Of a stretch of DNA of 64,000 nucleotides, positions 5,674 to 63,553 are shown one piece after another. The stretch is taken from the NCBI RefSeq assembly GCF_041956535.1, contig NW_027192209.1:429341-493340 (forward strand), given 5' to 3'. Each line of letters opens with the position of its first letter. Positions within the stretch are counted from its first letter, which is position 1. A program made the translations under genes and the position numbers. The notes under the pieces are model-generated. The model did no database searches, was not told where the DNA came from, and saw only the letters and a list, made by a program, of their open reading frames with translations. Source of the stretch: Calcarisporiella thermophila CBS 279.70. Lineage: Eukaryota > Fungi > Calcarisporiellomycota.

Positions 5674-6315
5674 TTACCAACCCCAACTACCGCAGCCATA
5701 AGGGACTCCGTACCCGATACTTCTAACGCCACAAGGCGAGATTCCGCCAATCCTTCCAAGACCATAAGGCAAGATCCCCTGTCCAATTCCAGCTAAACCA
5801 TATGCCGAGACACCAAATCCAATCCCTCCCATGCCGCCATATGGTATACCGTGGCTAATTCCCCCGCATCGCTTCACAACGGTGTTCGTATTAGCAACGT
5901 TGTACACATTGGCGTGGTTCTCTGCATTGGTGCATTCGTTAGCTTTGACATTAGCAGCAAGGTTCGCACGATGCTTGCAGCAGCTATCCAAGTCGGCACC
6001 ATTGGCATAATACGCGTTGTTGTAAACCCTAGGATAGCAGCCATATCCTCCACATCCGCCATATCCTCCACATCCGCCATATCCTCCACATCCGCCATAT
6101 CCTCCACATCCCCCATACACATCATATCCACATGGGTAAGACACGCCATAGGCACATGGGTAGCTCAAACCGTAAACAGATGGATTGCCGATACCATACG
6201 CGCCGCAACGTTTGTCGACAAGATTTTCTTCGTCAGTGAGAGGAGTAGCGAAAGAGGGGCAGACGACGGCAAGTAGAGCAAGAGGGAGAAGTACAAGGGA
6301 AGAGTTCTTGAGCAT
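5674..6315 (-). CDS. Secreted KR-processed Gly/Tyr/Cys-rich repeat protein, family member A (213 aa, intronless)
   Basis: Signal peptide MLKNSSLVLLPLALLAVVCPSFA, propeptide ending DKR, about 4 CGGYGG units, conserved core NNAYYAN...ANLAANVKANE...NHANVYNVANTNTVVKR and a Gly-rich tail; the core is shared with 58606-59211 and 63036-63553. Confidence 0.85.
   Translation of the reverse strand: MLKNSSLVLLPLALLAVVCPSFATPLTDEENLVDKRCGAYGIGNPSVYGLSYPCAYGVSYPCGYDVYGGCGGYGGCGGYGGCGGYGGCGGYGCYPRVYNNAYYANGADLDSCCKHRANLAANVKANECTNAENHANVYNVANTNTVVKRCGGISHGIPYGGMGGIGFGVSAYGLAGIGQGILPYGLGRIGGISPCGVRSIGYGVPYGCGSWGW
6041..6112. repeat. 18-nt tandem repeat x4 encoding (CGGYGG)n on the minus strand
   Basis: ccatatcctccacatccg repeated four times, the last copy with one mismatch. 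Confidence 0.95.
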
Positions 6316-7202
6316 TTTGTCCGAGTTTGTCTTTGATTGCTTTGCTTGTTTTTTGTTTGAAGTGTTCTGAATATGTGAATTATTTTGCAAAATCCGGTCT
6401 TTATATTCTTTCCAACTCGGCACCTCCGTCATTAGTTTTATGCACTTTCAACTTGATAATATCTCTTAAACAAGAGAATTCTTATTATACTAATTGATAT
6501 CAAATGTTATTACCACATATTTGATGAACTCCCCGTCTAGGTCAAATTTAGGTAAGTAAACAGACTCTTGGAAGCTAGTTTGATATTTCAAAGTATGCAC
6601 CCTTCGCTGAATGAATTTGTGTTGAGTATAGAACTATACCATTCGTACTATCGTGTATGATGACTTTAAACCGCGCAGTTTGTTTCAGTGAGTATTAGAA
6701 TGCCTTATTCCTCTAAGAGAAATATCAAATAATTCTATATGATTAATCAAGTAAATATAGGAGAAATTGAGATATTCTGAAGCATCTCTGACTTTGGTAA
6801 GTTAAAGCGAACAATACTAAGATAGTAGAGAAGGGCAGAAAACTTTGAAGAAGCCGAATAGTTTAGCAGTATAAAAAAAATCCTTGAATATATAAAATAT
6901 TGTACATATCAATATCGGCATTATAGTTCTATAAGGCTTGGTATACACAAATTATATTTCGCATATTGTCAAAGGACTTGGCCATTTTGGTTCCGAGTTT
7001 TTTCCCCCCCCAACTTCTATTCAATCCATTCAATTTGCCGCAAGGTGACGTTACCCAAGTAGCCTTTCCTCAACCCAGCAAAAAAAACGCGTTGAATCTC
7101 CCTTTATTAGCAGACTTACCAAGTTTTCTCTTTGTTAGCAAGTTCATCTCAGCCTTTTACTTATCATTTACATTATCATTATTTTTAGCTGCCAAAGCCA
7201 AC

Positions 7203-9045
7203 ATGGTATTAAATTGAATCATCTCTCAGTTTTATTTATATGAGTCTAGATTTTAATGCAGTTACACTTCTCATAATTCATAGGATGAAGAATATGATGT
7301 CATTGTCTTGGGCACTGGCCTAACTGAATGCATTCTCTCTGGCCTTCTTTCTGTCGAAGGCAAGAAAGTGTTGCATTTGGACCGTAATGACTACTATGGA
7401 GGTGAGAGTGCTAGCTTGAACCTGACTCAAGTGAGTACTCGAGTGAAATTTGCATATATAATGAAAAGGCGGATAATAAATTAACATCATCTCATTCCTG
7501 ATTAGTTTTATCGTAAATTCCGTGATGGTCAACAACAGCCGGCTGAATTTGGGCGTGACCGCGATTGGAATATTGATCTCATCCCCAAGTTCATGATGGC
7601 TGTAATTAGATTTTCGTATATATCGCTTAAAGGAGGACTTATTCAGCCCTCTTTTTATATTAGAACGGTGAATTGGTTAAAGTCCTTGTTCACACGGATG
7701 TAACTCGCTATTTGGAATTCAAGCAAATTGCAGGTTCTTATGTCTATCGAGATGGTCGCATCTCCAAGGTTCCTGCCACAGAAATGGAGGCCGTTCGCTC
7801 TCCCCTCATGGGATTATTCGAGAAGCGTCGCGCCAAGAAGTTTTTCGAGTTCATTCAGAACTGGCGCGATGAAGATCCGGCCACTCACAATGGTATTTAA
7901 ATATATTCTAACATAAAAATTTGCATAGTCAATATTAATTCTCGTAATAGGGGTTAACCTCGACACTTTGCCAATGTCTGAACTTTACAAGAAATTTGGA
8001 CTTGAGCCTGGTACCCAAGACTTCATTGGCCATTCGCTAGCACTCCACTTCAATGATGAATACTTGAACCGTCCTGCTCGTGAAACTTACGATCGGATTA
8101 TGCTCTATATGTCATCCATGGCCCGTTACGGAAAAAGTCCATATATTTATCCTCTATATGGACTGGGCGAATTGCCACAAGGATTTGCACGGTAAATGTA
8201 TTCCAGTAATTTTTGAGCTTTAAAGAATTACAATTTTTCTCCTTATTTTTTAGTTTGAGTGCTATTTACGGAGGCACATATATGTTGGACAAGAAGGTTG
8301 ATGAAATCGTGTTTGATGAATCTGGAAAGGTTTGCGGTGTGCGCGCCGGGGACGAGGTAAGTTCTTATGCTATAGTAGGCTGTCGATTTGTTTGACCGGA
8401 TTTGTTTCCATCGTTATAGACCGCCAAGTGCAAAGCCGTCATTTGTGATCCTTCTTATGCCCCGAATAAGGCGCGAAAAGTCGACTCAGTGGTGCGGGCT
8501 ATTTGCATCCTTAAGCATCCTATCCCTAACACGGATAATGCTGACTCCGTGCAATTGATCATCCCCCAGAATCAAGTCGGTCGCAAGCATGGTGAGAACT
8601 GGTTATCTCATATCATGACAATCATATCTTGCTCAATTCCATGTTATTTCTAGACATTTACATTGCATGTGTATCGGCTGCCCACAATGTTTGCGCTAAA
8701 GACTATTATTTGGCGATTGTGTCGACCATCATTGAGACGGACAATCCGGAAAAGGAGATTCAGCCTGGATTGAATCTGCTTGGCCCGATTGTTGAACAGT
8801 GAGTCAACCTCCTTCATTACCAGTATTAAGGGTCGTTATGCTTACATGCACTTGGTAGATTTATTTCGGTTTCCCCTATTGAAGAGCCTATTGCAGACGG
8901 CACGCAAGACCAACTCTTCATCTCGCGAAGCTACGACGCAACTTCGCATTTTGAAAGCGTGTGCGACGACGTCAAGGATGTTTACCGTCGTTTGACAGGC
9001 AAGGAGTTGGTGTTGAAGCAGCGCCCAAATGAGGCCGAGGCATAA
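7203..9045 (+). CDS. GDI1: Rab GDP-dissociation inhibitor, multi-exon (first coding exon is ATG only)
   Basis: M|[80 protein letters not shown] and SYDATSHFE. Confidence 0.97.
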
Positions 9046-9326
9046 ATAGTTAGCAATCTTCCACATTTCTCTTTTTTTTTTCACTTTTTTTCTTATATTT
9101 TTTTGATACAGTATAAAGATCTGAAATAAATATTTCGAATAAAGTTTTAATTTTTTTTTTAAATTCAGCACTCTTCGATTTTTTTTTTGTAACCCGAGCG
9201 TTAGACCCATTAGGTCAAAGGGTAAAGAGGGTGATTTGAATAACATAGGTAAGTGAAAATCCAGAAAAACCACTAATAAATGTTTACCATTAGGATGTGA
9301 TTGCTTTCTTCATCATATTTTTAAAA

Positions 9327-10084
9327 ATGATTCGATGTTTACTCACATTACTTCTCTTAGCGCCTGCATTTGCGCAAAACCAAACCTCCTCAGATGCCCC
9401 TTCTAATACCCCGATTAACATCCAAAACACTACGCTCCCTTTCTTGCTCGAAGGCGGGGCCAATGCTTCCGTTTCACTCTCTTTCAACGAAAATAAGACT
9501 TCCATAAGTCTATTCCTCCAGCCTTCTGCCAACGACACTCTCGAGCCTCGGTGTATGACTTTATTTTTCAACGCTCCACGTCTTGCAGATGAAGCAACTA
9601 AAGGCAAAACGACGGACAATAAAGAGGCGAATACAAGAGCATGCAATTTTAAGGGATGGGATGCAGATTGTGCCGATCATATTAGAATCAATGGCTGTGC
9701 TCCGGGGGGCCTTGTTTACACGTTGCCACCGACATGCGAGCAACGAGACATGATTGCAAGTACGTATATATTGAGACACTTAATATGTTAGGGAGAGACT
9801 AAAAAGATGACATGTTTTATTCATTAGTTCCGATTAATATAACGGGCGTGGTGGGTAAAAACAACCCTGCTCAACCCATCTTCACAAGCACAACGTCTCT
9901 AGGGATGCGCATGCTTTCTAACTCGTCAGTTGCGATAGCATGGACTCGCGGTTCTGGAAATATGCAGACATCTACAACACTCACATGCAACAATGTCATC
10001 GCAAATGCTTCGATTAAATCATCGACCTTAGCTATGGGATGGATATTGATTCTGGTCGTAGCAAGTTCAGCTATACTTCTCTAG
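9327..10084 (+). CDS. Secreted, probably GPI/membrane-anchored hypothetical glycoprotein, 1 intron
   Basis: Signal peptide MIRCLLTLLLLAPAFA, several N-glycosylation sequons, several Cys, hydrophobic C-terminus (MGWILILVVASSAILL); intron about 9760-9827. Confidence 0.65.
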
Positions 10085-10576
10085 AAAAGCTATATATATA
10101 GTTAGATATCATTATATTGTACTTTTTAGCGACTTCGTTTTGTCAATCCTCTATCCTTTCTATTATTAGAGAGGGAAAGAAAAAAATATAGACCTTCAAT
10201 GCAAAATTTGGTTATTGATATCGACACAGCTTGAGATTAAATCATCCTCTTGATAGTTTCTTTCAAATTATCGTTGCAGTTTTTCACGAGATGATCCTGG
10301 TTTGATGGGTATAGCCCCGATTGTTCACAAGCATTAGTAAGCTCTCTAGTAATTAGTTTTGATATCTCATTTTTCAGTAGGGGAAACCAATAAGACCAAT
10401 GATGTTATTTTGACAGAAATGATCAGACAGAAGAGAGCAAAGCATAAATGAAAACGCTTTCAAACAGAATGATTTTTATTAGTATGAAGGCTGTGAGCAG
10501 ATTTACTACTGGAGCCCGCGTGCTCTTTTTCAAACATTGGAAGAGCCACGAATTTTTTTGGCGGGGGGTCAGGAGT

Positions 10577-11433
10577 TTACTTATTGGCAGGTTTCATGGT
10601 TTCCTTGCAGAGTTCAAATTCACCCACAACAGACTTGAACTGCTCAATGTTCTTACACATGGTAAAGTGGCGCGTCACATTTTGGTAGTCTTTGCGGAAT
10701 TCTTCCTCAAAGAGGAATTGGAAGCCAAACTTCAGTGAGGTGAAAACGGCGATATCCGCGAGGGTGATGGACTCACCAACCATATAGGTATGGCTGGCCA
10801 GGTGCTTGTCCAGACTGGCAAGTGCACGTTTGAGCGCGGTAATCGCCTTTTGATGCACAAACTCGTTGTATTGCATGTAGCCCATAAGAGGGCCACTCCA
10901 TGCGGAAATGTGGGGGTTGAATTCATTTTCCGAATACAGAATCCACTGCCAGATCTGAGATGCCTCTTGTTTGTCTCGGCCAAGCAGGGGATTGTTATCT
11001 TTGGAGTTCGCAACTAGAAAAAGTACACACAGCCCGGATTAAATTCGCGTGCGTAAACAGTATTGCGAAAATAGATTTACCGTGGAACGCGATAGCGCTG
11101 CTTTCAAATAGCTTTAGCCCATCGGCGCCCTCAAAAGCCGGGACCTATAAGCAAGGTCAATTGTTTTCATTTCTCTCGTAATGTGCATTTCCAATGGTAA
11201 AATTCACCTTGCCAAGTGGGAACTTGGCGAGGAATTCCTTCGTATAATTGGTCTTGCCCATTTCGAAGTCGCCATCGATTTCTAACTCAGCACCACTATA
11301 CTTGGCAGTGATGAGAATTTTCGCCACGCGTGGGTTGTGGGGGTAGGTGTAGAGTTTCTGTTATTACAGCATTCAATGTCGTGTTAATTATGAATTACTG
11401 AATATAAATCATAATACTCACACCGAAGACCAT
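10577..11433 (-). CDS. Glutathione S-transferase-fold protein similar to the eEF1B-gamma N-terminal domain, spliced
   Basis: KLYTYPHNPRVAKILITAKY, EFLAKFPLGK|VPAFEGADGLKLFESSAIA and LDKHLASHTYMVGESITLADI; the ORF stops after ELCKETMKPA with no EF1G C-terminal domain. Confidence 0.8.
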
Positions 11434-12220
11434 TGTTCTCAAAAATTTTTAGAAAAAACCTGGGAATTAATTCTCGCCACATTTTCTCACCTTTTTACGC
11501 GCTCGATGGGGCGCATTTTTTCCGCAGCTAAGCTGAAGGGCTGAGGTTAAGTTCATTACTTGTTATGTATATATCAAGCGTGAGGTTGGGAGGACCAGAG
11601 GCAACAAAGAATTCAATTGGGATAGAGCAAAAGGAGGCAAAATGTGGCAGCGGTCGCGTTCCGAAGCTTCAAATTCAAGGATCAACAATAGAAAGAGTAG
11701 AAAGATCGCGCCTGATCCAGGAGGAAGACTAGCCCTTGCAAAGATTCTTAGTCCTTTCTATACTTTCTATTGTTTGAACTCTTTTTCCTAATCTTTGACT
11801 TAGTCTTCTGCTGCCTGGCATCAAACTACACCGAATCCAATGGTATATCTTGGATTGGTAACTTGGTATGCCGTCTACCCTAAGCCTCCTTTTTACGCTA
11901 GTATTTTCCCATCATGATTCCATACTCACGGAGGTTTAAGAGCAGAGTAATAATAGGCATAACTTGGACCAAAACCCTCAACCCAAACTGAGAAATTAGC
12001 GAGAAATTAAAATGGGCATCTCATATTTTCGGATGGATCGGACACGTATTCCTATTCAGTTGCAATTCGAATCAAATTCAGGTGGAGTTCAAAAGTGAAC
12101 GCGTTCCTTAGCAATCATCTCTTCTCCCCTAGCTATCGGTTGAGGTTTAGATTGATAAATCGGCTCGCACTCCTACTGAATCTTTTCCTCACCTAATATT
12201 CACTTCTTCAGAACCTCACC

Positions 12221-14333
12221 ATGGCTACCATGTACAGATCTTCCCGCCGCCCTCCTAGCTTTCATGGTGATAGCTCTGAAGCTACCTCACCCAATGTTAA
12301 TGATGCTAGGAAGCGGCAGTCCAAAAAAGATGAGGTAATCATTGATATATTCATGCTAATGCCATCGAATATTCATTAAGTGTTCAATCACTTTAATTGC
12401 AGGCTATTCGAAAGAAAATCGAGCAGGAACTTTCTAAAAAGCGCAACAGCCCTCGCCAAACCCGCCTTACTTCCAAGAAGCAGATCCAAGGTACTGTGAG
12501 CGCCCTGCGGCCATCGTTTGCTTTGACTGTGCGTGAGAATTGCTTGGTTGTGGAAGCGAGTCAATTGATGGCTGCAAAACGGAGCGATTGTGTGTTGGTG
12601 GTGGATGATGAAGATCGTCTCTGCGGAATTTTCACAGCTAAGGATATTGCATTTCGATTGGTCGCAGAGGACTACGATGCCAGGTACTGCGAAAATGTTT
12701 GCTCAATTCTTCTTTTTTTTTAGATATTGATCTCCTATGTATCATAGAGCTACTCCTGTCTCTGTAATCATGACAAGAAATCCAACTTGCGTAACCAGCG
12801 ATACTCCAGCTCCAGATGCTTTAGAGACCATGGTGCAACGTGGGTTCCGACACCTTCCCGTTTTGAACGAGGATGGTGATGTGGTTGGGCTCTTGGATAT
12901 TACTAAATGCTTGTTACAAGCTCTGGAAAGAATGGATCGTGCATTTGGGACGTCTAGGAAACTTTATGAAGCTCTTGAGGGTGTTCAATCGGAATGGAGT
13001 GGCGCTGATCGCAGGTAATTCTGAAATAATTTTGGGTGCTAACTAGCTCAATGCTGAAACGAATGCGTGTATCTACTATAGCTTCTTTTCGGTGATGAAG
13101 CAGATACGCGAGAAGATGTCCTGCCCGGATCTGAACTCAGTTCTTGATGGAGCTCAACACGCGGAAGTTGGTGTGCGCACCAATGTGCATGAGGCAGCAA
13201 AGTTGATGAAGTCAGTTCGCAAAACTTCTGTTCTTGTGATGGAGAATGGCAACATTGCCGGCATCTTTACGTCGAAGGATATTGTATTGCGAGTCATTGC
13301 GGCGGGTTTGGCCCCTTCGTCATGTAGCGTTGTGCGCGTGATGACACCGCATCCTGACACGGCTACGCCGACCACCACAATTTTAGATGCCCTGAAAAAA
13401 ATGCACGAAGGACACTATCTCAATTTGCCTGTCATCGACGACATTAGCCGCGATGTGCTTGGGGTGGTGAATGTGCTCCAGCTGACTTATGCGATGTTGG
13501 AGGAAATCAGTAGTATTGAAGGACAAGGTGAGAAGGGAAGAGGGATGGTGAACCGATTTTGGCAGTCATTTGCTACGCACGATGATGCGGAATCCGCCAG
13601 TGTCACTTCGGACACCGTTGCCTCCACACCAAGTGGGGCTGGGCATGTATACCCCCCTACACCCTCAAGTATATCGCGCGCTTCGCGGCCCAATACCTAT
13701 CCTTCTCGTGACTCGCCAACCCCATCTCAAAATTACCTTCATGAGGAGCAGGCTGCGGCCGAAGGAGAATACACATTCAAATTCCGGTCTCCAACTGGCA
13801 AAATGCACCGCTTTGTTGCCGAGACGAATTCTCTGTCCCACATCCGTGATGCCATTAAGTCTAAATTACTGAACGAGCGCATCAGTTTGGAGGACCTGGC
13901 TGCATCTCTTCACGCTGACACCTCGGATGCAGCCTTAGACGACAGCTGGATCGCACTGAGCTACGTGGACGACGACAATGACCACGTGCTGATATCAAGC
14001 GACGCCGACCTGATGGACTCTGTACAGGTGGCGCGGAGACAGGGGGCGGGAAGAGTGATGCTCTATTTGCACGATCACCTGACTCAGCAGCCAATTACCG
14101 AGCCTGTTTTAGGGGCTACTGGCGGAGAGCTGGACCACAACCCGACGGCATCGCGAGAAGACGAGAAGAGGGAAGTTGAGAAAAAAGCGAAGCGATTGAC
14201 AGGAAAGAGAGAGGAGAAGCCTGCGCCGTTCGGAGGAATTCCCAACGAACTCCTTTTGCCGGGTGCGATTGTTGCGTTGGCCGCCACCATTCTTTGCGTA
14301 TTTGTCGTTGGTCGGTTAACACGCTCGAAGTGA
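12221..14333 (+). CDS. CBS-CBS-PB1 domain protein with C-terminal TM helix (Mug70/CBSCBSPB-like), spliced
   Basis: RKRQSKKDEAIRKKIEQEL; CBS repeats (GIFTAKDIAFR, GFRHLPV, GIFTSKDIVLRV, GHYLNLPV); PB1 (FKFRSPTGKMHRF...LSYVDDDNDHVLISSDADL); C-terminal hydrophobic helix. Confidence 0.88.
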
Positions 14334-14936
14334 TTTTGCATAAGTTGCAATGGTGTAGGAGGGTAGTCTTTGCTAAAGATCGTATAATGTTTCCCTTCTT
14401 TTTTTGTACCCATTTTGCTCATTTTCCTATCCTTATTTTATTCTATTTTTTTTCTTCTTTTTCTTCCTAATGATTTTTACTTCATTTATAATTTTACCAC
14501 TGTATTAGTCTGAGGCTTATGTTATTTCACTTATCTAGGCTTTTATTTTTATTCCTTTCTACCTTCTCTTGTCTTTATCTAAAGCTGATATTAAATCGAC
14601 TGCTTTCTCTAAAAACCGCCGCATTTGTCCCTTAACAATGGAGATGCTCAACTAGAAACAAAATTTATACCTCGCAGATCAGTGTTTGGACTCGATATTT
14701 CTCATAGACCGTGATCTCTCTAAGAATACCTCCACTTGTCTATGATTCCTCACCTACATTCACCTACACGCGCTCTGTAGCAATGTAAAAGTCATGCTTT
14801 CAAGATTTTTCTTTGTAAATCCTTGGCCAAAGAGAAGTGTGGCGTAGTTGCTGGATCATCTAAATTCTATGGTTAACAGAAACTTTCTCCAAAGATCTTT
14901 TTTTCCTTTTCTTATCTCCTATAATCTAAAGATCCT

Positions 14937-15904
14937 ATGGCGCTGAACTGGGCGATGCTTCGCGAAGACCGCACGCCGGTTCTTCTTCCACAAGAGAAAA
15001 TGTTTATTCATCAGGGAGGAGTGCGATTGACATTAGATTGCACAGGAAGGTAATTCATGAAGGTGGCAAAATGGCTAGAATATAGATTAATCAATTAATT
15101 TTTGAATTTTGCAGAGGTTATCCCGGCAATTCGTAAGTTTCTCTCACATTTACTCAATAGATCAAAAGCTTAAATCGCTTATCGATGCAATTCATATAGA
15201 GGCGGTGTTTATTGCTCTTCAAATGGAACCGTTTTTCTTTCCAACAGACGGGTAGGAGTATCTTCTATTATATCGACTAGTTCCCCTGTTACAATTCATT
15301 TGTTCCATCCGTGCAGATAGTCTACATATGTGCTAATCCACAACCTCACTTCCAATCACTTTCCGTACCTCTCCGACACTTATCACAAGCTAAATTGAAC
15401 CAACCTTGGCTTGGACCTAACAATGTAACTGCTGTAGTTCAACCCGTAGGTGCCCTCTTATTTCAACATGATCCCCATTGCACCAACGTCTTTTTACCGA
15501 AACATTTGTTTTTAGGTTAGAGAAGGGGGATTGGAGCTTCCCGGCGTGCTTAAGCTCGTATTCAACGAGAGTGGTGCATTCGATTTCTACTGCGTATTTC
15601 GTGAGCTGTTAGAACGCCTAGCAGGTAAATGCCCGCTCATTTTACCCTTTTTTTTTTGTATTCATCTCTTTTCTTGTTGCCAGAAAATGAAAGCGAAGCT
15701 CCTCCGGACCACTTCGAACCTCTTCCTGTCTATACCGCATCTATGGGCAGTAGCTCAACAAACATTTCACATACCCCTCCGGTTTCTTCCAGTTCACATT
15801 TTCCAGAACCAAGTGCACCGCTGGCAGAAAGTCCCGAGCCAGTGCCGATGATTAGGGAAGACGAGCTTCCGCCCAGCTATGATGAGATCGTAAAGCACAG
15901 ATGA
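14937..15904 (+). CDS. WW-domain binding protein 2 (WBP2)-like GRAM/PH protein, spliced, with an 18-nt micro-exon (15115-15132)
   Basis: MALNWAML...PVLLPQEK, GTVFLSNRR, LNQPWLGPN, LKLVFNESGAFDF, C-terminal LPVY and PPSY motifs. Confidence 0.75.
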
Positions 15905-16141
15905 GATTGCAAAGCACAGATACTGCTCTTGATCACTCCATAATTGTGTGTACGATCCACTTTTGCATAATTATTATCCCCTTCTCTTTATAAGTAATAA
16001 TAGTAATAAGCTTAGAAGACCGTCAAATCTCTATGAAGCTGAAGCAATGGAAATAGAGTGTATATTCAAAGCCTGGCAGAAAATGAGCCCAATATTTAAA
16101 TTTAAAATAGCAAAGAAGAAAAAAAAAAAACAGAAACTCCG

Positions 16142-17723
16142 TCACATCATGCTATCATCATCGTGCCCGTGCTCGAAAAGATAGTTCGCTGCCATCTCCT
16201 CGTCCTTGTCGCACGCAATATATGCTTCTATAGCAATGGCGCGATCAAAACCCAATGCTTGTAGCTGGGGTGGTTAGGCAGAAATTATTAGTCAATGTGC
16301 AAATGATGGTTGGCCGAACAAGGATGTTATTTACTCTATTGATGGCTTCATTTTCCTCCATCGTAATATGAATGACGTCTTCATCGCCCTCCTCACCCTC
16401 GTAATCGTCTCCTTCGCCATGCTCCCCACCCTCTCCGCCTTCACCCAACAACCGCAAAAATGCCTCCTGGTTACTATCAATCAGCTCCACCAAGCGTGGG
16501 TTTGACTGCGCTAGCTGGCTAAGAATCACAGGGAGCAGCTCTGGGTTTTGCTGAACAAGCTGGCGCAATTGCTGGAATTGCGGCTGATGACGTAAGAAGG
16601 AGAGATCAGCATCGCTATCTCCGCCACCTGTGCGCTGTTGTTGTGGTTGTTGCTGCGCAGCATTGGCAGCAGCCTCAAAAAGATTTTGAGCGGCCTCCCC
16701 TTGCTGAGGCTGAGAGTGTTCTGTGGCGCCTGACTGAGGGTTGTGAGTGGCCTCTTCTCCTTCTAAATCTGCCGGAATTCCCTGTGAAAAATGGGAACCG
16801 CAATCAAATTAGACTCTGAATCTATCGGATAGGTTGATGCAGTGAAAATTTTCAATGATATAATTACATTCATTAAGTATTCCACGGCGCGGTCAGGGTT
16901 ATTGAAACTAGCTCGCATCGCCCGAATTACCTGCTCCCGCGGAAAGCCCATCTCGACCATATTATTAATGGCAGATTCGTACTGTGTCCCTGTTACTAAG
17001 ACATTCAGATATTAAAGTCAGGATGGAGTCGTCGATAATATCACCTAAACATCAATATTTTTTGGAATATAAATACCAAGAGCTTCGGAGGTATTCCAGG
17101 AGGAAATTCCGGTATTTTGACTTGGTGCGGCTGCGGGTTGCGGCGGGGCTGCTGCTTGTTCTCTCGTTGGTTTGTTGTCAGCAGCAACTGATGCCGGGGC
17201 AGGAGCAGGGGCAGGAGCAGGGGCAGGAGCAGGAGCAGGGGCAGGAGCTGATGCAGAGGAAGTGGATGTAGCATTGCTGGTGGCAGGTTTCGCTGCACTG
17301 GTTGTTTTTGGCTAAAATCGTGTTTGTTTATTAATATTCCGTTCAGAATCTCCCTTTGTTTTTTTTTGCGTACCTTGGAAACCATAAGCACCATAAAGTC
17401 CTTTTCAGACATATTCAACTGTCCAAAGACTTGATCATCGCTCAAGATCTTTCCTATTATACCAAAAATAAATTTTAGGGAATGATTACCAAGACACACG
17501 AAAAATAATGCAGATAGTACCTGAAAAAATTAGCTTCTGAGAGGCCGGCTCGAAACCTTGAGATGTCTGGATCTTGGCTTTCAAAACCGAAACCTATTAG
17601 ACGCGCAAAAGTTGCAGGTTAGAGCAGTCCAATGCAGAGGCTATTTATTCATCGTACCGTATCCTCAGGTTCGGCATCGATTTGGAAAATTTTCTGCTGG
17701 AGCGTTTTTATCGAAATCTTCAT
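16142..17723 (-). CDS. RAD23: UV excision repair / ubiquitin receptor Rad23, spliced
   Basis: [13 protein letters not shown]...[46 protein letters not shown]-binding [12 protein letters not shown], terminal [22 protein letters not shown]. Confidence 0.95.
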
Positions 17724-18182
17724 CTTTACAGTTGGTATGGATTATGAAAACGAAACTGCTGGACTGGTATATTAGGCTCGAGAATATTCAAACATTTTGT
17801 GACGTTGCTTGCCAATCTTTAGTTTGCCCAAATGAGCTCAGAGTTTAATTTGCTTATATTTTCACAATTGGATTATTCCGATTATTCATGTGTGTTCAAT
17901 ACAGACGCGCCGTGTTGAGTGATGTTCTTTGGCAAGAGAGCTGTTGAGAATACACCACACATATGATGCATGTTTTGTCCAGTGCTTTTTGAATATTTCC
18001 TGAGGGAACCTAGTATTTTGCTTGCTTTTTCTGAGGAGAGTCTACGCGGCGACCTAGTATTTTTTGTAGCTCGACCAATTTAGATTCGGGGCGTGAAGTA
18101 TATGCTTATACAAATATTCACAAGATGCTACAGCTACTAAATAGTTTGGTATCCATCTGAACTCGACCACTATTATGCATTC

Positions 18183-53071: not shown

Positions 53072-53630
53072 GGTACTCTTATATTCTCTTCGCACTTTTC
53101 AGGTCTTTAAGTGGATTGGACTTTATCTTTTTTCAAGCTATCGCAAAATGGTAGTTCACTATTTCAATCTGGAACAATTTTTACTTTTCTTTTGTATTAA
53201 TGGGGGATATTTAGACTGATCTTTATTTGGATTAAGTGTAGATGGGTAAAACTACATTTGTTTAATTGTAAAATTAAACTCCTTTTTTTTTTCTCTCCTA
53301 GTTTGTGTTATTTTTCTTTTTAGTTTGTTGTTTTTACACTTTTCTCTTTGGAAATAATTACTGTAGGCAACTCCGAGCTTGTGCCTTTCAGGCAATCATC
53401 AACTAACCTTGTAAATGGTGCTCCTATGCAGAAGTTTTCTTGAAACTTTACATTAAGACTGCGTCGTCTTATCTATTTATGCATTCGAAACTTATGCAGC
53501 TTAAAACATCACTCAGTTAAATTCCCAAATATGAAATGAATTTCGAAGCCTCATTAATTCCAATTCCGTTGTATCTTGTCAAAATATATATCTATTACTC
53601 AAAATGTAATAGGATTAAATTACGGTATGA

Positions 53631-55477
53631 TCACACCCAGCGACATCCAGCCGACTTATCCACAACCGTCTTACGCTCTAAGATTTCCTCTACTCTTTCT
53701 TTGACCCCTCTCTTTCCTTTTCGCTCCCGCAGGAAGAAATCTACAACCTCTGTACGAGTCAATTGTACTGGGCCAGTATCAGGGTGCTCACCAGTGACCA
53801 CTCGCTTCACCTCCTCTTCCTTCGGCAATCCATAGCGTGCATGGGGGTATGCTTTGAAATTTTCCTCATGCAGCAGTTCTAATTCCTTTGGTTTCTTTTC
53901 ATCAAAGAATTTTCGTTTCACCTCTGTCGTCTTTACCTCTTCTAGTTGGGCAGGATTCCACTTAGGGCTGTTGGTTTTCGTAATTAGCAACGCGGTCACA
54001 CCTTCGTGGAAATCTGGTGTTTTAAGGAATTGCTGCGCAAGTCGGTATTCCATCTTAAAGCAATCGGCTACTCCCAGTTGAGATCCTTTACGAATTTGGG
54101 CAAGCGTGACTTTGAGGCTGGTAGGGGACATCTGCATAATCGTATCGTGAGCTTTTTTGGCAAAGTCAGTAGGATCATTCTTGAGGGCATCCACAATTTT
54201 TTCAACATCGTTAAATTTGAAGCATCTATGAAGAGAGATTCAGTGTTTATAGTCAGTCTGATAAGAATTGGGCGTTGGAAACAAAGCATTAATACCTATC
54301 AATGACCCGACGAGAATCTCCCCCAAGTGAAAAAGAGTGCTGAGGATCAACACTGGCTGTAAAATCTTCTATAGCCGCATTGACAACATCATAGCTAGAC
54401 GAGTCCAGTTGGCTAAGGCGCTCCTCTAAACTGGCGAGACGAGAGGATGGAACATAGTGGGTTGCGATTCCGGCATGACTACGAAAAAAGAAAAGTGGTT
54501 AGCTAATGTAATCATGGAGCATAGCTATGATAACTGATTTGCATACAAAACATCTTCTCCCTTAAGTCGCGCTCCGCTTAGTGCAAGATAAGTTCCCAAT
54601 TCTCCATCTAGCCGAGGCAGGAAGAAAGAGCCGCCGACATCTGGGAAGAAACCGATCTTGGTCTCAGGCATAGCGAACACAGTATTTTCAGTAGCAATGC
54701 GAAAAGGAGCGTGGACCGACAAACCAACACCTCCACCCACTAATCGTATATTCAGAATATGTAAAAAAACTGCGAAATCAATACCCAAAGGATGCAAGCT
54801 ACTTACTTGTTACGCCATCCAAAATGGCGACAAATGGTATTTTAAAAGTGGAAATTAAATGGTTTAGCTGGTATTCTTCTTCAAAAAATTTAACAGAGTT
54901 TGGATCATTTTTTTGTGCTAGTTCAATTACAGCTATGATTATGAAGATAGTTAAAATTAGAATATTATCCTTATGAAAAATTAATATATTAGGGAGAACT
55001 CACATTTCACATCTCCCCCTGCGCAAAATCCTTTTCCAGCACCCTTGAGAAGAACAAGCTTGCATAGCTCTGAATTTTCCCAAGTGCGCAAGTGTGAAGT
55101 CATAACTCTGACCATATTAAGGTTTAGTGCATTCAGAGCCTTGGGTCTATTTAGCGTAAGGACACGGCTACCAAACACCTTATTAGGTATCACCTCCATC
55201 TATTTTTTGTCAAAAATAAATCAGATTACTTCCTCTGCAATAATATTCCATGGCAAATTACCTTCTGTTCCTCTGCTGTTGAAGCCGCTGTGCCATGTTT
55301 TATGCTGGTAACGGTAGTCATCTATAATTTGGAATAAACTCTAGTATAGACAGCAAATTCTGGTAATTATGGATAGCTTACGTTCACAATATTCGGGAGG
55401 AAATAAGGGGAAGTTTGGTTAAACTTGGTTAATCTTTTGGGCACATGCCTCAAGGATGACGATACGAGATTATACAT
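53631..55477 (-). CDS. EHD3: 3-hydroxyisobutyryl-CoA hydrolase, mitochondrial, multi-exon
   Basis: Mitochondrial presequence, [68 protein letters not shown] and DFHEGV. Confidence 0.93.
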
Positions 55478-55658
55478 TTTTCAACTAATCTCTCTAACCG
55501 AGAACCAAAGTTTATCGAAAATATTGTGGGAATAAAATATTGATGTGACGTCGAAATTTTAAATATTTCGTAGTCACAACAGTAATTTAAATGGATTAGA
55601 ATTAGTATGTTAATAATTAAAACTTGAAGGTTGTGAGCGCTTGAGGTAGCGCTTGGCC

Positions 55659-58134
55659 ATGTATTTCTATCACCTTCGATTTGAAATATACACAATTGCA
55701 CATAGTTATTCAGAGGAGGAGGGAGCGACTTCTTCAAAAGATCATTCCGCTTATCTTGATCTCAACAGATCTACATTTGTACCTGAGGACATATTTGAAT
55801 CTTTGCCTGCAGACACAAATACTACTGTTAAGGGTCTAGATAAAAATAGCTCCAGAAGTAGAGAAGAGCATTGGGATTACAAGTCTGTTAATCGCGCTGC
55901 CCCCAGCAATTTAATCCAAATTTCATTACCGGTTTTTTCGACATTGAGTCAATCCCAGCCATACCGTAAAGTTGGTTTAGATCGTCGTGTGGGTCCAATT
56001 GATATTGTGTGGTTCAACGCGCTTGAGAAAATAGATTCTGTGATGAGTGAAGACGGATCGAGAAAGACAGAAGAAGCAACTAAATCGAATGCAGGAAATG
56101 ATTCTATTGAGGCACCAGTTGATCATACACGTGCCGAATCGAGCTCCTCCGTTAATACAGCTATAAATTCGGCTGAATCTAACAATTTTTCCTCTGCTCT
56201 CTCAGTTTCACGTGGAAATGCTTCGCCGACCCTCAGATCTACACCAACTAAATCTAAGCTTACTGTACCTGTCGGCACTGTTCAAACACTTCCAGAGTTC
56301 TCATCTGGCAATACAGAACTCAGCTATGGAATCGTGCACTTGTACAGAGATTCCCAGGAGATACCCAACGGAGAAGAGCCATATTTGAAATTGGATACAA
56401 AAGTATCGAATGATAGTGCAAATGGGGGGCTGCAAAATGTCCTTTGCGTGTTAGCAGTACCATCCTATATGTCACCTGCAGACTTTGTGGCATTTACAGC
56501 TCCGGTTGCAGATGCTGTTTCCCACTATCGTATTATTAGGTATTTTGGTGGATTATATTTGTAACATGATCCATTATTAATATTTTTATATAGGGACGCT
56601 TCACCGAATAAGTTTTTGGTACTCATGAAATTCCGTGATAGTGAGCATGCAGCTGAATTTTACAAACAATACAACGGACGCCCTTTTAGTTCTCTCGATG
56701 TAAGTTTAATTTTATTTTTATTGTTCAAAGTTTAAATGATAACTGTTTGCTACTATATCTAGCCGGAAATTTGTCACATTGTCTACATAAAATCTGTGGA
56801 ATTCAAGTCCACAGCTATCCCTCAATTTGCTTTCCCTTTCTTCCATGGCGTTGAGTTTGATTCATCCGCGACTTCTTCTGACTTATCTCCTGTTGGCTCA
56901 GCAGCCCCTATTTATGAAATCCCAACCTGCCCAGTCTGTCTGGAACGAATGGACTCATCAGTCACTGGCCTCCTTACTATTTCATGTCAACACACTTTCC
57001 ATTGCCATTGCTTAAGCAAATGGGGTGACAACAGGTATGTATTAAAATTTTTTGATTCACATCATCCAGCAGAGTGAATCATCGGATCACTTTGTTTTAT
57101 AGTTGTCCAGTATGCAGGTATAGCCAGTCACGTGATATGCTTGATGAAGAAGAGGGCGTAGAGCAGAGTGTATGTGGTGAGTGTGGTGCTAGTGAGAGTC
57201 TATGGATCTGCTTAATATGTGGTCACGTTGGGTGTGGGAGATATCAAGATGCACATGCGTATGCTCATTATGAATCCAGTGGTCATCTTTACTCTTTGGA
57301 GCTAGAGACCCAGAGAGTATGGGATTATGCTGGAGATGGGTCGGTTCATTATTTAGGGTTTTCGAAATAGTCTTTTATTGACCTAGGGCATCTCTATAGG
57401 TACGTGCATCGCTTGATTCAGAACAAAACAGATGGCAAGCTCGTGGAATTACCTTCTCCAAATCCTGCTGCTCAGTCCGAATTCCAGAATCCCCATGACG
57501 CACAAGTTTCTCAAGAAAAGCTTGATGCTATTGGGCTCGAATTCTCTTATCTTCTTACTTCACAGCTCGATTCGCAGCGCATGTACTATGAGGCAGAACT
57601 TGAAAAGATAGTGATGCAAGTATCGGCGCTGACTGCACAAGTCAAAAACTTGACCATGGAAGTAACTACTCTGAGTGCTGGAAAAGAGCAGGCGGAACGA
57701 GAATTAGAGGAGTATGGAAAGACCGTCAGGGAATTAGAACAAGGGAAGCGAATGGCAGAAAAGAAACTAGAAAAGGCGAACGATCGCCTGAATAAAGTAG
57801 AGAAAGAATTAAGAGAGGAGAAAGAGGTAAATTACTATCTATATAGTTAAGTAAAACCCTTCATAAATCTATTGCTTATCTGTAGATGTGCAATTCTCTG
57901 CGTGCCAATCAAGAAGAATATAAAGCATCCCTTAGCGCGAAGGAGCGTGAAGCTGCAGAATTGCAGGAGCAAGTTCGGGATTTAATGTTCTTTTTGAGTA
58001 CCCAGGAGAAAATTGCAAAATCGGAACTGCGAGATGAATTACAATCTGGCACCGTAGTAGTGCCTTCCAGCCCAGAAACCAGCTCTGGGACCGGCACAAA
58101 TTCGCCGCGGGGTAAGAGAAGGGGTAAAAGATAG
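55659..58134 (+). CDS. ETP1: BRAP2/IMP-like RING + UBP zinc-finger E3 ligase (Etp1-like), multi-exon
   Basis: GIVHLYRD, LCVLAVPSYMSPADF, RING EIPTCPVCLERMD...CQHTFHCHCL...CPVCRY, ZnF-UBP LWICLICGHVGCGRY...QRVWDYAGDGYVHRLIQNK and C-terminal coiled coil. Confidence 0.92.
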
Positions 58135-58605
58135 TTGGAATCCTTAATGCTTCTTACATCTGTTTATAGTACCTATTTCTAAGTTCACGATCGTTATATG
58201 ATTAATATTTTATATATATTTGCTTCTCACATCACTTATTCCCTTTTACTTGTTCTTCCTTTGTTCATGTACAATAAATATCATTCAGGACTCCATTAAT
58301 CTTTCCATCTTTGATTATGCAGTAATCTCCCAATTGGGATCGAGTAGAGGATCTCGTCTTTTGATTCCATTATCGGTAAATGGTGAATTGTTTAATTATA
58401 GAAGCTAGAATTCACAAGTGTATTCAAGTAGATTGGATATTATAACTGCCTTCAAAAATTATTCTGCAATTTAAATTGCTCGGCCAAATTTTTTATTCTT
58501 TTATAAAAAAGAATGAAAGGGAGTAAAAAAGAAAGTTTTGGAAAATTGTATCACGGCATTTTCAATTGATATTGTGTAAAACGAGTGATGTGTGGGAGGG
58601 TTGGT

Positions 58606-59211
58606 TCAAATGTATGGTGTGCCAATTGCACCAAGCCCAGTGGTATACTGCAAACTAGAGGCAAGTGGGATTCCAGAGGCATATTGCAATCCAGTAGCAT
58701 ACGGTAAACCAGCGGTAAGTGGCGATATACCGGCAAGTGGCGATACACCGGCGAGTGGCGATATTCCGGCAAGTGGCGATACACCGGCAAGTGGTGATAT
58801 TCCGGCAAGTGGCGATACACCGGCAAGTGGTGATATTCCGGCAAGTGGCAATCCACCAGCAATTCCGCCTAATCCCAGAGGTAACGCTCCCAGTCCCGCT
58901 ACCTGCCGCTTGTGAACCACCGCATTGGTGTTCGCAACATTGTACACATCGGCGTGATTTGCAGCCTTGGTGGCCTCGTTGGCCTTAACATTGGCTGCAA
59001 GGTTTGCATGGTGGTGGAAGCGGTCTTTTACATTGGCAGAGTTGGCATAGTAAGCACTATTCAAGACGGTGGGGAATCCCCATCCGATGAAGCGCTTGTC
59101 GATCTCCGCCGAGTTCTCAAGTTGCTCAGCAGGAACCGGGGAGGCAGAAGAGACGTGGGCAAGTGCCAAGAAGAAGGCGACGCACAAAGTGGAGAGGATG
59201 ACCTTGGTCAT
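58606..59211 (-). CDS. Secreted KR-processed repeat protein, family member B (201 aa, intronless)
   Basis: Signal peptide MTKVILSTLCVAFFLALAHVSSA, pro-region ending IDKR, core NSAYYANSAN...HHHANLAANVKANEATKAANHADVYNVANTNAVVHKR, then QVAG...(LAG[I/V]SP)7...TPYI. Confidence 0.88.
   Translation of the reverse strand: MTKVILSTLCVAFFLALAHVSSASPVPAEQLENSAEIDKRFIGWGFPTVLNSAYYANSANVKDRFHHHANLAANVKANEATKAANHADVYNVANTNAVVHKRQVAGLGALPLGLGGIAGGLPLAGISPLAGVSPLAGISPLAGVSPLAGISPLAGVSPLAGISPLTAGLPYATGLQYASGIPLASSLQYTTGLGAIGTPYI
58720..58845. repeat. 18-nt tandem repeat x7 (36-nt higher-order period) encoding alternating LAGISP/LAGVSP
   Basis: tggcgatataccggcaag, tggcgatacaccggcgag, tggcgatattccggcaag and so on, seven consecutive units. 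Confidence 0.95.
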
Positions 59212-59693
59212 TTTTGCTGAGGAGTTGTTCTTGTAAGGAAGTCGAGAAGCGGCTGTTAGTTGAAAAGAAACTGCACTTTTCTCGACACTTTTATATCCAA
59301 ATGAACATATAAGATCGAATACTGATACATCAATTTTCCAGTGTCTGATGCCATCTCTAACACAGATACAGCGACAATATTGCACAGCTTTGATTGATAA
59401 TTGATGAAATCTTGAACACATGTTCGAGAATGCTCGTCATCTTATCCAAGCCAAAATAGTGATTGTACATAGATAGCTAATTACATATTTGTAGGACATC
59501 CAAGTAATATATCTGTAGATTTCACATTCAAAAGATAATACGCAATCATTCTAAAAAGATCGGTAATTTGCAGTCACATTTTTGCAATCATGTCTTAAGA
59601 ATCGCTTAAAATCATAAATATGTATATACTGCCCTGCTCGATGAAAAATCTCGATAATGAATAGGACAAAAAGTGGTATAAAACAGGATCATT

Positions 59694-62575
59694 TCATTCT
59701 TTATAGCCTTCCAATTTCCCAAAAACAATCTGTCCGTCCAACACGGTACCTAGCACTTTACTCTCTAATATCTCTTTTTCAGGTATCGTCATGATATCCT
59801 TTGAGAACACAACAAAATCTGCAAACTTCCCCGGCGAGATAGAGCCAACCTATAAAATTAAATGCTGGTTATTGCGGTCGAGCAAAAATATTATGCGTCA
59901 ATAATATCTTACCTCATTCTCTTGAAATGCAGCATATGCAGCATCAATAGTGAAGCCACGCAATGCCTCTTCTCTAGTTAAAGTTTGTTCTGGATACCAC
60001 CCTCCATCGCCACTTGGCGACGTTCCATCCGTGTATTTTCGAGTGATAGCCGCATAAAAACCGAGCAACGGATTAGATTTTTCGATCGGAAAGTCGGATC
60101 CTAACGCAATATAGGAAGAGCTGGTAAAAACTAATAAGCGTCGATTCTAAAAGTGTAATAATAGCACTAAGGAGTTACCCAGAATTCAAAAAGGATTTCC
60201 ATGCATATGCACCTTTAATTCTTTCCGGACCCAATCTTTTTTCAGCATATGACATATCACTTGTAGCTGAAAAAAAACTCAACTATAAGCATGTGGTGTA
60301 TAAAAATTCGCAATCTATTTGTTTACCATGGGTCGGCTGCATAGATGGAATGATACCAAGCTCGCTAACACGACGAATATCATCCAGTGTCTTAGATTGA
60401 TATATAATAAAACATAGTTAGAAAGTCAATTCAAACAGGAAAACCTTCAATGAGATTGTACAAGAATTTGGGCATGCTCTATTCTAAAGCGATGGAAGTG
60501 GTTTAACTTGAAGCCATTATTCGGCGCCTCCTTGCTGTGGCTCTTCAATATTTCCTCGAATGTGTTAATGGTGATATGATTGGCTAGGTCGCCTATACAA
60601 TGGACATTGACTTGGTAACCGTTGTTGGCCCATTGACGGGCAACTTCCGCCAAATAAGTGGAGTTCATGAGCAGAAAGCCAGATTTTGTAGGATCATCTT
60701 TTAAAATAGGCGAGTTTCTCAACACCAATGGAAATTTCAATCTCAAAGAAATTTTCTTACCTGTATAAGGCTCCATCATTGCTGTATTAATATAATATTA
60801 ACAAATCATTAGAAAAGAACGAAATCCTTATAAATCCATATTTACCTGCTCCCCAACTGCCAATGGCCCCATCCATGAAAAGCTTAACACTTTTGACGGA
60901 GAGTTTTCCGGCAATCTCGAAAGGAGGTACTAAATGGCCACAATAGGTGTTTTTTTCCTCACAGGCAAGCATTGCATAAACTCGGAGCGGGAAGCGGTCG
61001 TACTGAATGGCTCTGGTGAATAAAGGAAATTAAGATATGTCCTCTGAGAAATGATACGAGTCTGGAATCCAATACCTTTTGAAGAACTCAATTCTACTTG
61101 GAGTAGTAAAGGCATTATGCATGCCAGTAATACCAACTGAGTGGAGCTCGGTTATTGCAGCGTCTAATGCGGACAAATTCTCTTCCTCGGTGAACTTCGG
61201 TACAAGTTTCTCTGGCAAATGACAAAACGTTAAAACAAGATACTGTAAAATCGTATGACAAGAGGGACACAAACCGACAAGAAACATTGCGTTATCGACA
61301 AATACACCGTATCCTGGGTCTTTAATAATTTCCTAAACAAAACATTTTTAGAATTCATTTTGTAAAACAATAGATCAAAAAATTAACAACAATACCCCTC
61401 CATCCAGTGTCTGCTCTAAATCAATTCCCTGTTCTTGGAGAAGGGATATAACCTTTCCGTTGACCCAATAAGCATGATAATCTATGCGGTATAATACTAT
61501 TGGGTATTGAGCCAAAATAGGTTCTTTGTCAAGATCCTCCTATTAAAAGAGTTTAAGAAAAACATTAAAAAATGCACAGTATATAAAGAGCGAATGGTAG
61601 AGCTACCGCGGTAGGGAATTTTCCTTCCGGCCACCTGTTTTGATCCCAGCCAAACCCTCGTATCCACTGTCCGGCTTCAGGTCGTAGCTTAGCAATCTTT
61701 TTAAGCAAGCGCTCTCTGACCTCTACAAGAAATTCAAATGCATTTGATAACTACCAAATAAAATCTTGACTAAGTTTACGCCCACCTTCTATGGAATTAG
61801 CTCCGGTGAGGTCTGGCTGCAATATGGATTGGCCCAGCTCCATCAAATGCTAAGACGTAAATCATAATAGGTCTAGGCATTTAACTCTCTCCAAATAATA
61901 TAAGTATGTGGGATACCTACGCCATGTGCATCAATTATTCCCGGGACGATAGTTTTATTGTTGAGATCATATACCTTAAAAATAGATTTCGAGTAGGTTA
62001 GTATAAAAATGAAGGAAATCAAATCAGGCCAACTTCGTACAGTGCCCTTGTTCTTCCATTTCTTTAAGATATTCTTCTTTTCCCCCACTTCTATGAACTT
62101 TCCGTTTTGTACTACAAATGCTTCGGCATGAGGGCGCGAACTATCCATGGTGATCACGTTGGCATTGTGTACTATATACAGGGTGTTTCTAATTTTTTAT
62201 CATAGATGAGACAATCCTATATTTAATAATTCTATAACGTCATGGAATTACCCTGTTCTTAAAAACCAAAGATACCCTGCGAATACTAGGAGAACTCCGA
62301 AGACAATAACGTTTAGTAATCTTAGATTATTTGAAAGCTTGGAATGCGACTAAATTCAAATAATAAACAACATTAACGTTAATTCATGAGTAAAGGTATT
62401 GAGTCAGCGAGAAAAGGCTGAGAATACTCTAATTTAAAAATTCTAATGGAAGATCTCAAAGCCCTAATTCTCTGAACTTTACCGATATCAGGGGTTCATT
62501 TTCAGTCGCATTCACAGCTTCAGAAGCTGTCGTGAAGTCATTTTTTGGGGAGCGACGTCGATTCGAGATTGCCAT
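59694..62575 (-). CDS. Amidohydrolase-3 family (YtcJ-like) metal-dependent hydrolase with N-terminal membrane anchor, multi-exon
   Basis: IVHNANVITMD, PGIIDAHG|HL, GFGWDQNRWP, RIDYHAYWVN, VKLFMDGAIGSWGA, HCIGD, RIEHAQI, SMQPTH, GSDFPIE and GSISPGKFADFVV; hydrophobic segment near the N-terminus. Confidence 0.88.
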
Positions 62576-63035
62576 TACTGATATTCTTTTTCTCACATTC
62601 AACGTGAATCCAACATATGCGGAATTTAAAAAGCTTCAATTAGCTTCAAGAATTGGTAGTTAGTTTTGCTTAGGCGGTTACATTGAACTGAGCTCTCTAT
62701 TGAAATCAATCCTTTACTAATTTAATTATCTGACATGATTATTACCATTTGCTAGAGAATATTAGGATGATTGATATCATGTAACAATTCATGATCAATA
62801 GCCAGTAAGCAGATCTTTCTTTTTTACAGGTATCATAATACATAGTAAGAACCCATCAATGAGCAAATAAAACCTTAACTAATCGCAACAAAGTGTTTTG
62901 ATCTTGAAATAATGATAAAACGGGCAAATTTATACAGTTTTATAGATATAAATAAAGAGAATATATCCATTTGTTTTTGTCTTTCAACCAGCAGCCGCTT
63001 CTCGACTCCCTTACAAGAACAACTCCTCAGCAAAA

Positions 63036-63553
63036 ATGACCAAGGTTATCCTCTCCACTTTGTGCGTCGCCTTCTTCTTGGCACTTGCCCACGTCTCTTC
63101 TGCCTCCCCGGTCCTGCTGAGCAACTTGAGAACTCGGCGGAGATCGACAAGCGCTTCATCGGATGGGGATTCCCCACCGTCTTGAATAGTGCTTACTATG
63201 CCAACTCTGCCAATGTAAAAGACCGCTTCCACCACCATGCCAATCTTGCAGCCAATGTTAAGGCCAACGAGGCCACCAAGGCTGCAAATCACGCCAATGT
63301 GTACAATATTGCAAACACCAATGCGGTGGTTCACAAGCGGCAGGTAGCGTCATATCTGGGATTAGGCGGAATTGCCGGTGGATTATCATCTGCCATTGGT
63401 GTATCGGCACTTGCCGGTGTATCGCCACTTACCGCTGGTTTGCCATATGCTTCTGGATTGCAATATGCCTCTGGAATCCCGCTTGCCTCTAGGTTGCAGT
63501 ATGGACTGCCATATACCACTGGGTTTGGTGCAATTGGCACGCCATACATTTGA
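63036..63553 (+). pseudogene. Frameshifted paralog (member C) of the secreted KR-processed repeat family
   Basis: Near-identical to member B over the 5' half, but reads ccg gt-cct gct where B reads ccg gtt cct gct (1-nt deletion at about 63112). This gives TGA at 63183-63185, while the downstream frame still encodes the intact core and tail. Could be a sequencing error. Confidence 0.7.

Follow-up and report, generated by a model that had tools for sequence, protein, structure and literature searches.

Calcarisporiella thermophila is a thermophilic fungus and the sole sequenced member of the phylum Calcarisporiellomycota. Here, we analyzed a stretch of 64,000 nucleotides of its genome (strain CBS 279.70; contig NW_027192209.1, positions 429,341-493,340 of the forward strand; hereafter the window), which carries three related genes, designated A, B and C, for putative secreted proteins with a conserved Asn/Ala-rich core. 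An initial annotation of this sequence had described three intronless genes of one layout. The open reading frames (ORFs) and translations agree with this for A and B, but not for C, which has a 1-bp deletion near position 63111. The genes and their parts are as follows (window coordinates; aa, amino acids):

5674-6315, minus strand: gene A, 213 aa, intact and intronless
6208-6315, minus strand: predicted signal peptide of A (aa 1-23, cleavage after SFA) and acidic propeptide (aa 24-36, ending VDKR)
6022-6207, minus strand: Gly/Tyr/Cys-rich N-terminal arm of A peptide 1
5869-6021, minus strand: Asn/Ala core of A (aa 99-149, ending VVKR)
5677-5868, minus strand: peptide 2 of A (36% Gly, repeated [LIV]PYG motifs, aromatic C-terminus)
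58606-59211, minus strand: gene B, 201 aa, intact and intronless (P0006)
59092-59211, minus strand: predicted signal peptide of B (aa 1-23, cleavage after SSA) and acidic propeptide (aa 24-40, ending IDKR)
58906-59091, minus strand: peptide 1 of B, a short FIGWGFPTVL arm plus the core, ending VVHKR
58906-59061, minus strand: core of B (aa 51-102)
58609-58905, minus strand: peptide 2 of B (Gly/Leu/Pro/Ala-rich, zero charged residues)
63036-63553, plus strand: gene C, a recent copy of B (coding sequence ~95% identical)
63185-63340, plus strand: core of C, in the frame of ORF 62912-63553

A and B share a hydrophobic N-terminus, an acidic stretch of 13-17 aa ending in [VI]-D-K-R, a peptide 1 with the core plus KR at its end, and a Gly-rich peptide 2. 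Their identity is 67% in the core and 46% over the whole proteins. When the 28-Mb genome of the fungus itself was searched with B, A was matched at E=6.6e-21, far above chance, which confirms the conserved Asn/Ala core of about 50 aa proposed initially. A second search of the same genome with a core profile detected 15 core copies and one truncated fragment on eight contigs. These copies belong to 11 genes: A, B, C, VTP21DRAFT_4011, 6700, 6891, 11344, 9658, 3624, 8158 and one gene on contig C21 (contigs are given by our own labels). Eight of the 11 genes have a single core, and VTP21DRAFT_6700 and VTP21DRAFT_4011 contain two tandem cores each with KRR in between. B, C and VTP21DRAFT_4011 form a cluster, the last gene lying 1.7 kb past the end of the window. 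The earlier observation was largely right, and the family extends well beyond the first three genes.

Pairwise Nei-Gojobori estimates of the ratio of nonsynonymous to synonymous substitution rates (dN/dS) were 0.02-0.23 for the core, with synonymous sites saturated between subfamilies. Within the A subfamily all four regions of the protein had a dN/dS below 1, the core being lowest and the C-terminal peptide highest (0.16-0.52). The core is under strong purifying selection.

The Gly-rich arms change fast. The repeats that had been named for A and B correspond to tandem DNA arrays, i.e., an 18-nt unit in 4.3 copies (98% matches) at 6040-6117, which encodes (GGYGGC)n in the arm of A, and a 36-nt unit in 4.2 copies at 58713-58862, which encodes (LAGISPLAGVSP)n in peptide 2 of B. 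The arms consist of near-perfect tandem DNA repeats of this kind, and the copy number differs between B and C. In spite of the initial description of the flanks as wholly different, which is overstated, the family alignment revealed two motifs in all intact members: G-[WY]-G-x-[FY]-P just ahead of the core and [LIV]-P-Y close to the C-terminus. Gly makes up 20-36% of the arms and Tyr up to 25%. The KR-bounded pieces are 62-113 aa long and largely low-complexity, and the predicted mature peptides are near neutral and not cationic. The number of Cys residues per protein ranges from 0 to 12, and many KR-bounded peptides have an odd count, which hints at intermolecular disulfides. An even number of Cys in each KR-bounded peptide, considered as a test for intramolecular disulfides, was ruled out because many counts are odd. 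Within the core, Cys residues at positions 14 and 30 are found together in the A subfamily, and B, C and 6700 have neither; a general covariation rule (NCF/NEC versus NRF/NEA) was broken by the C21 gene and 4011.

The distribution of dibasic pairs indicates how these proteins may be processed. In the nine intact proteins we counted 22 [KR]R pairs, all at aligned module borders, compared with about three expected from the content of Lys and Arg, and neither KR nor KRR occurs anywhere else within these proteins. The sites have the context [VI]-[DE]-K-R after the propeptide, where the KR of A is invariant in the family alignment, and KRR between tandem cores. The P4 residue is mostly aliphatic, with Val or Ile at most second sites. 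Kex2 takes Arg at P1, Lys at P2 and an aliphatic residue at P4, and the Kex2 site of the yeast alpha-factor is LDKR. In addition, the genome has six loci with a proprotein-convertase P-domain (PF01483; P-domain loci at C5:1110032-1112179, C7:757755-759762, C17:258385-258645 and C19:558104-558436, including two head-to-head pairs), and locus L019 was confirmed as Peptidase_S8 plus P_proprotein. Six kexin-like loci is an unusually large set for a fungus and is consistent with the many KR-punctuated precursors in this genome. The presence of these genes makes processing at KR plausible. The N-termini were judged by a rule of thumb applied to the N-terminal sequence: they have an h-region that is hydrophobic, with small residues at -3/-1, and AlphaFold2 confidently predicts a helix in B over residues 2-22, with a predicted local distance difference test (pLDDT) score of 86-88. 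This suggests a signal peptide. A Kex2-type layout, as had been proposed, is strongly suggested by these features, and it is probable that the family proteins are secreted and cut at KR.

To characterize the distribution of this family, we searched several collections. A, B and C had no Pfam match at E<=1, chorion families included, and no meaningful NCBIfam match at E<=10. With the family profile as query, a word-indexed search of 5.8 billion proteins returned C. thermophila only; with the core profile, an exhaustive HMMER scan across 1.84 billion representatives returned C. thermophila proteins and one spurious match. P0009 (1061 aa, E=1e-8) was rejected as a relative: it is a protein with a 10-fold cystatin-like repeat, and only a 20-residue stretch was matched per repeat. 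Pattern scans found no relative of the core in JGI metagenome contigs or in bacterial and archaeal genomes, a profile search of PDB sequences gave a chance match only (E=0.42), and the ESM Atlas gave no usable match. As far as sequence searches can tell, the family is an orphan with no detectable relatives. A multicopy, lineage-restricted family without a Pfam match had been predicted, and the core search bore this out with 11 genes in C. thermophila only; we regard it as almost certain that this is a real, lineage-restricted coding family.

Gene C deserves separate treatment. Its span is 518 nt, which is not divisible by three. The ATG at 63036 opens a signal peptide identical to that of B, and one T has then been lost relative to B near 63111 (GGTCC in C, GGTTCC in B). 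All other indels between the two coding sequences are multiples of three (-12, -87 and +12), and both flanks of B and C diverge sharply, unlike the coding sequence. Considering the near-identical coding sequence with otherwise in-frame indels, C was either coding until very recently or the 1-bp deletion is an assembly error. The public model of C (VTP21DRAFT_4010, P0007) lacks a signal peptide because of this deletion. The core of C reads YNIAN in place of the YNVAN of the earlier consensus.

The upstream regions of the family were also compared. The promoter elements in the window are as follows (negative numbers are distances upstream of the start):

6316-6505, minus strand: promoter and leader of A, conserved with five paralogues on other contigs, with GATATC (-186), TTGTTT[GA]A[GA]AGAT (-158), TATAAA at 6400-6405 (-90) and the leader CAGAACACTTC (-54)
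59290-59295, minus strand: TATAAA of B (-84), downstream of an alternative upstream ATG at 59421
62947-62952, plus strand: TATAAA of C (-89)

Six paralogues, each on a different contig, have upstream blocks in common, namely GATATC, TTGTTTGAGAGAT-TTATCAAGT, a TATAAA at about -80 and the leader CAGAACACTTCGAA, and nearly all members have TATAAA at -66 to -108. The alternative upstream ATGs of A and B precede the TATA box, an arrangement that favours the short start that begins with the signal peptide (201 aa in B). A DNA search for other genes under an A-type promoter returned family members only. Since the promoters are conserved across paralogues, the family is probably co-regulated. Palindromic GATA-type elements (TGATATCA, GAT-TTATC) are present in the upstream blocks of A (6316-6505) and of loci L005, L008, L009, L011 and L012; these may serve as sites for a GATA factor in the co-regulation of the A subfamily.

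Based on these features, we tentatively read the family as secreted, kexin-processed structural proteins of the wall or surface, the account as a whole having somewhat less than an even chance of being right. We infer secretion, cleavage, a wall or surface role and any self-assembly, and the steps would be as follows. The signal peptide would take each protein into the secretory pathway, where a Golgi kexin-type convertase would cut after the invariant KR or KRR and the acidic propeptide would be lost. Cleavage would free at least one unit made of a Gly/aromatic arm and the 51-aa core, together with a Gly-rich, nearly uncharged C-terminal peptide. Of the roles considered, the most likely one for the released pieces would be a structural one in the wall or surface of hyphae or spores. 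The core could serve as the common interaction module, binding either itself or a wall polymer, and the rapidly expanding Gly/Tyr/Cys or Gly/Leu/Pro arms may set cross-linking (by disulfides, possibly also by dityrosine) and surface properties.

It is the composition, the repeat-driven evolution of the arms, the free cysteines and the near-neutral charge that argue for a structural role in the wall or surface, which, taken by itself, we consider possible but somewhat doubtful. Analogues are silkmoth chorion proteins, high-Gly/Tyr keratin-associated proteins and plant Gly-rich wall proteins, all of which resemble the family in their Cys-containing repeats of the GYGG type and in a design that joins a conserved central block to repetitive arms. 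Expansion of repeats drives arm evolution both in chorion-type structural proteins and here. However, these proteins come from another kingdom and show no homology, and the dibasic processing sites belong to the family described here. The parallels to chorion and to the Rep1 repellent of Ustilago that had been drawn initially are no more than analogies; no sequence relation to either was found. The earlier interpretation is supported in part.

Several points weigh against this account. The structural role is argued from composition and from analogy with Gly/Tyr/Cys-rich proteins of other kingdoms only. No helical or strand period reached significance in the hydrophobicity spectrum of the core. 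AlphaFold2 modelled the whole of B, with the family alignment, at a pLDDT of 50.5, the signal peptide alone being confident, and the core alone as one long low-confidence helix (pLDDT 48.7). The public protein collection has no entry for gene A, of which the 213-aa and 252-aa readings were both looked up, and translation of C from the ATG at 63036 stops after 49 aa, with the core in a different frame. Beyond the genome itself, there are no contigs on record that encode B or 6891. Finally, with one genome for the whole phylum, the orphan status may be a sampling effect.

An alternative, which we consider unlikely, is that these are precursors of diffusible bioactive peptides with signalling, pheromone-like or antimicrobial functions, or of peptides that are made by ribosomes and modified after translation (RiPPs), as proposed for many of the KEX2-processed repeat proteins (KEPs). 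KEPs have been described in Mucoromycota and other early-diverging fungi, where their peptides are longer (PMC6339444). They resemble the family in having a signal peptide, KR/RR-delimited peptides and early-diverging hosts with long peptides (PMC6339444; PMC7329392), the signal peptide and the cleavage being predictions in the present case. The genome is rich in KR-punctuated polyproteins and has the kexin-like genes that a KEP needs. Two genes of the family have KRR-separated tandem cores, and at least two units are present in the C21 gene. However, the published KEP pipeline requires at least four fragments after in-silico KR/RR cleavage (PMC6339444); A, B and the other single-core members give three, and only 6700 and 4011 give four or more. 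The repeated peptide that defines a KEP is likewise found in 6700, 4011 and the C21 gene but not in A, B or C, which have one core each, as do most genes of the family. The pieces are long, largely low-complexity, and near neutral and not cationic. Unlike KEPs, they pair a conserved module with arms that are variable and of low complexity, and their sequences are unrelated to the described KEPs.

The RiPP version of this alternative was also examined through the gene neighbourhood. Dikaritin-type RiPPs have short KR-flanked cores and clustered UstYa/DUF3328 and tyrosinase genes. Here, the pieces are 62-113 aa long, and the ORFs beside A, B and C encode no UstYa, tyrosinase or methyltransferase, but only housekeeping families, i.e., SAPS, enoyl-CoA hydratase, BRAP2, a coiled-coil protein and amidohydrolase fragments; this comparison took ORFs only, and intron-rich genes could escape it. 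The surroundings of A, B and C do not look like a biosynthetic cluster.

Whether the core could form amyloid was considered in relation to its internal pattern. The triplet A-N-V is found three times in the core (positions 9-11, 23-25 and 37-39), and identity autocorrelation peaks at a lag of 14. The core resembles a series of about 3.5 imperfect repeats, each of 14 residues and with Asn in fixed places, a pattern that fits an Asn ladder but falls short of establishing one. The Kex2-released core might polymerise as a cross-beta Asn-ladder amyloid and form a repellent- or hydrophobin-like coat, with the arms setting cross-linking or hydrophobicity. The fixed Asn positions recall the ladders of curli CsgA and HET-s, which also consist of short imperfect repeats, and a conserved core beside differing arms would suit co-polymerisation. 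The Rep1 peptides of Ustilago are released by Kex2 and form amyloid-like fibrils, as summarized in PMC6339444, and the best hydrophobicity period of the core is two residues (z=3.1).

We consider this quite improbable. The period-2 signal was reached by 19% of shuffles and is not significant after correction. The self-assembling amyloid core of the initial annotation gained no support from structure modelling, which gave a low-confidence helix instead of strand (pLDDT 49-50). CsgA and HET-s have repeats of 19-23 residues compared with 14 in the core, and no sequence relation to them or to other known amyloid families, to Rep1, to hydrophobins or to chorion was found. Rep1 of Ustilago maydis is a secreted precursor that is cut at Kex2 sites into peptides of tens of residues with a role at the hyphal surface, as may be the case for the present family; the analogy is confined to function. 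Rep1 is encoded by a single gene of about 12 repeats and the family by 11 dispersed genes, mostly with a single core, and the profile searches detected no sequence similarity to Rep1.

Moreover, the suggestion that the lineage is without classical hydrophobins does not hold for this genome. A class I hydrophobin gene is present at C25:89122-89352 (L021:342-668; PF01185, 80 bits, 8-Cys pattern), and two weaker hydrophobin loci were found at C18:373349-373579 and C18:374809-375051, so that the argument from a vacant hydrophobin niche falls away here. Hydrophobins outside Dikarya are rare yet recorded (bioRxiv 10.1101/2022.08.19.504535). Class I hydrophobins and the present family, whose secretion is predicted, are both small secreted fungal proteins and possible surface coats, but hydrophobins have an 8-Cys pattern and a Pfam match (PF01185 / PF06766), and the family has neither. 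Taken together, the results neither lend support to an amyloid role nor exclude it. An extended version, in which the core would be a new self-assembling Asn-ladder module and paralogues with different arms would co-polymerise after kexin processing into a coat specific to Calcarisporiellomycota, is a long shot. If true, the Asn-ladder coat would be a third solution beside hydrophobins and repellents, working at 45-50 C despite 25% Asn, and the different arm types (Cys/Tyr-rich, elastin-like Gly/Leu/Pro and double-core) would make it modular and tunable.

It is also quite improbable that the core is a diverged relative of a larger family of Asn-rich, KR-flanked peptides of about 51 aa in the same genome, fused to low-complexity arms. 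Such a second family does exist: the DNA pattern for KR-G-x-x-D-G-x-x-N-N had 18 exact matches compared with none in the control, on contigs C8, C9, C12, C20, C28 and C29, and its units start with KR-G-[LIV]-x-D-G-S-x-N-N. The loci are the following:

C8:959765-959956
C9:240763-242481, C9:322767-322979 and C9:787589
C12:180845
C20:195181
C28:302457-302957
C29:330891

The unit length is about equal to that of the core, and VTP21DRAFT_6700 is preceded on its own strand by one of these genes, which ends about 1.4 kb upstream. On the other hand, the core profile had no match to this second family in the genome at E<=10. It had none in the exhaustive scan either, in which the many tandem copies of that family would sum. 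In the visible unit starts, only about 4 of 19 residues agree with the core, and no bacterial relative of the core was found. A blind sample of 200 kb of contig C1 contained no other KR-rich, Asn-rich ORF.

The last alternative, that the KR pairs are kept for folding or binding and each protein is one uncut secreted or wall-bound chain, could explain why odd Cys counts in peptides 1 and 2 are often even when combined (11+3 in A), since disulfides could join the parts, but it has little chance of being right, because the sums are still odd in most members (7+4 in 6891, 9+0 in 8158 and 9+8 in 3624), [VI]-[DE]-K-R after an acidic propeptide and KRR between cores are archetypal Kex2 contexts, and there are no dibasic pairs elsewhere in these proteins.

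The family has some wider relevance. The design of a Kex2-processed secreted precursor is already known, and by sequence comparison this family is unrelated to the known examples. Orphan families of secreted proteins are very common in fungi, and this one is clean and testable. The cell surface of the one-genome phylum Calcarisporiellomycota is almost unstudied, for which the family provides candidate lineage-specific wall or surface proteins. It also offers a test case for the diversification of kexin precursors, in which one module is kept and repeat arms are swapped, and thermostable peptides that self-assemble or cross-link might be obtained from it.

Some family members outside the window have incomplete or questionable models:

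C19:494973-495623: VTP21DRAFT_4011 (public model P0005, 245 aa)
C21:274678-276600: multi-core gene, at least two units of about 95 aa, split by a gap of 1117 N at C21:275079-276195
C37:165088-165201: truncated core (profile positions 3-40) in a 56-aa ORF, 2.2 kb downstream of VTP21DRAFT_8158

The public model of VTP21DRAFT_4011 starts 28 aa upstream of the signal-peptide Met, and the annotated start probably hides a signal peptide. The C21 gene has a 1-bp frame change immediately before its assembly gap, and its public model (P0008, 245 aa) bridges the pieces over this gap; the model is probably wrong, and three or four further units of about 95 aa could be hidden in the gap. The truncated core on C37 is probably a pseudogene remnant.

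The window itself has one assembly gap at 38136-39067, at a distance of 19.5 kb from B and of 31.8 kb from A. The gap lies outside the genes of the family and their promoters and therefore affects the stated distance from A to B only. Its left edge (38080-38135) is a 15-nt tandem repeat resembling ATCATCGTCGCAGCA, and repeat collapse is probably the cause of the gap.

On the same contig as the window, we also noticed a secreted polyprotein of KR-separated, Met-rich amphipathic units of about 53 aa (DIKGMLQNFRQFQE...) at C19:623452-624852 (L023:953-2353), which is broken by an assembly gap. The Asn/Ala-core family is part of a wider pattern in this genome, in which several kexin-like genes occur together with several unrelated KR-punctuated precursor families.

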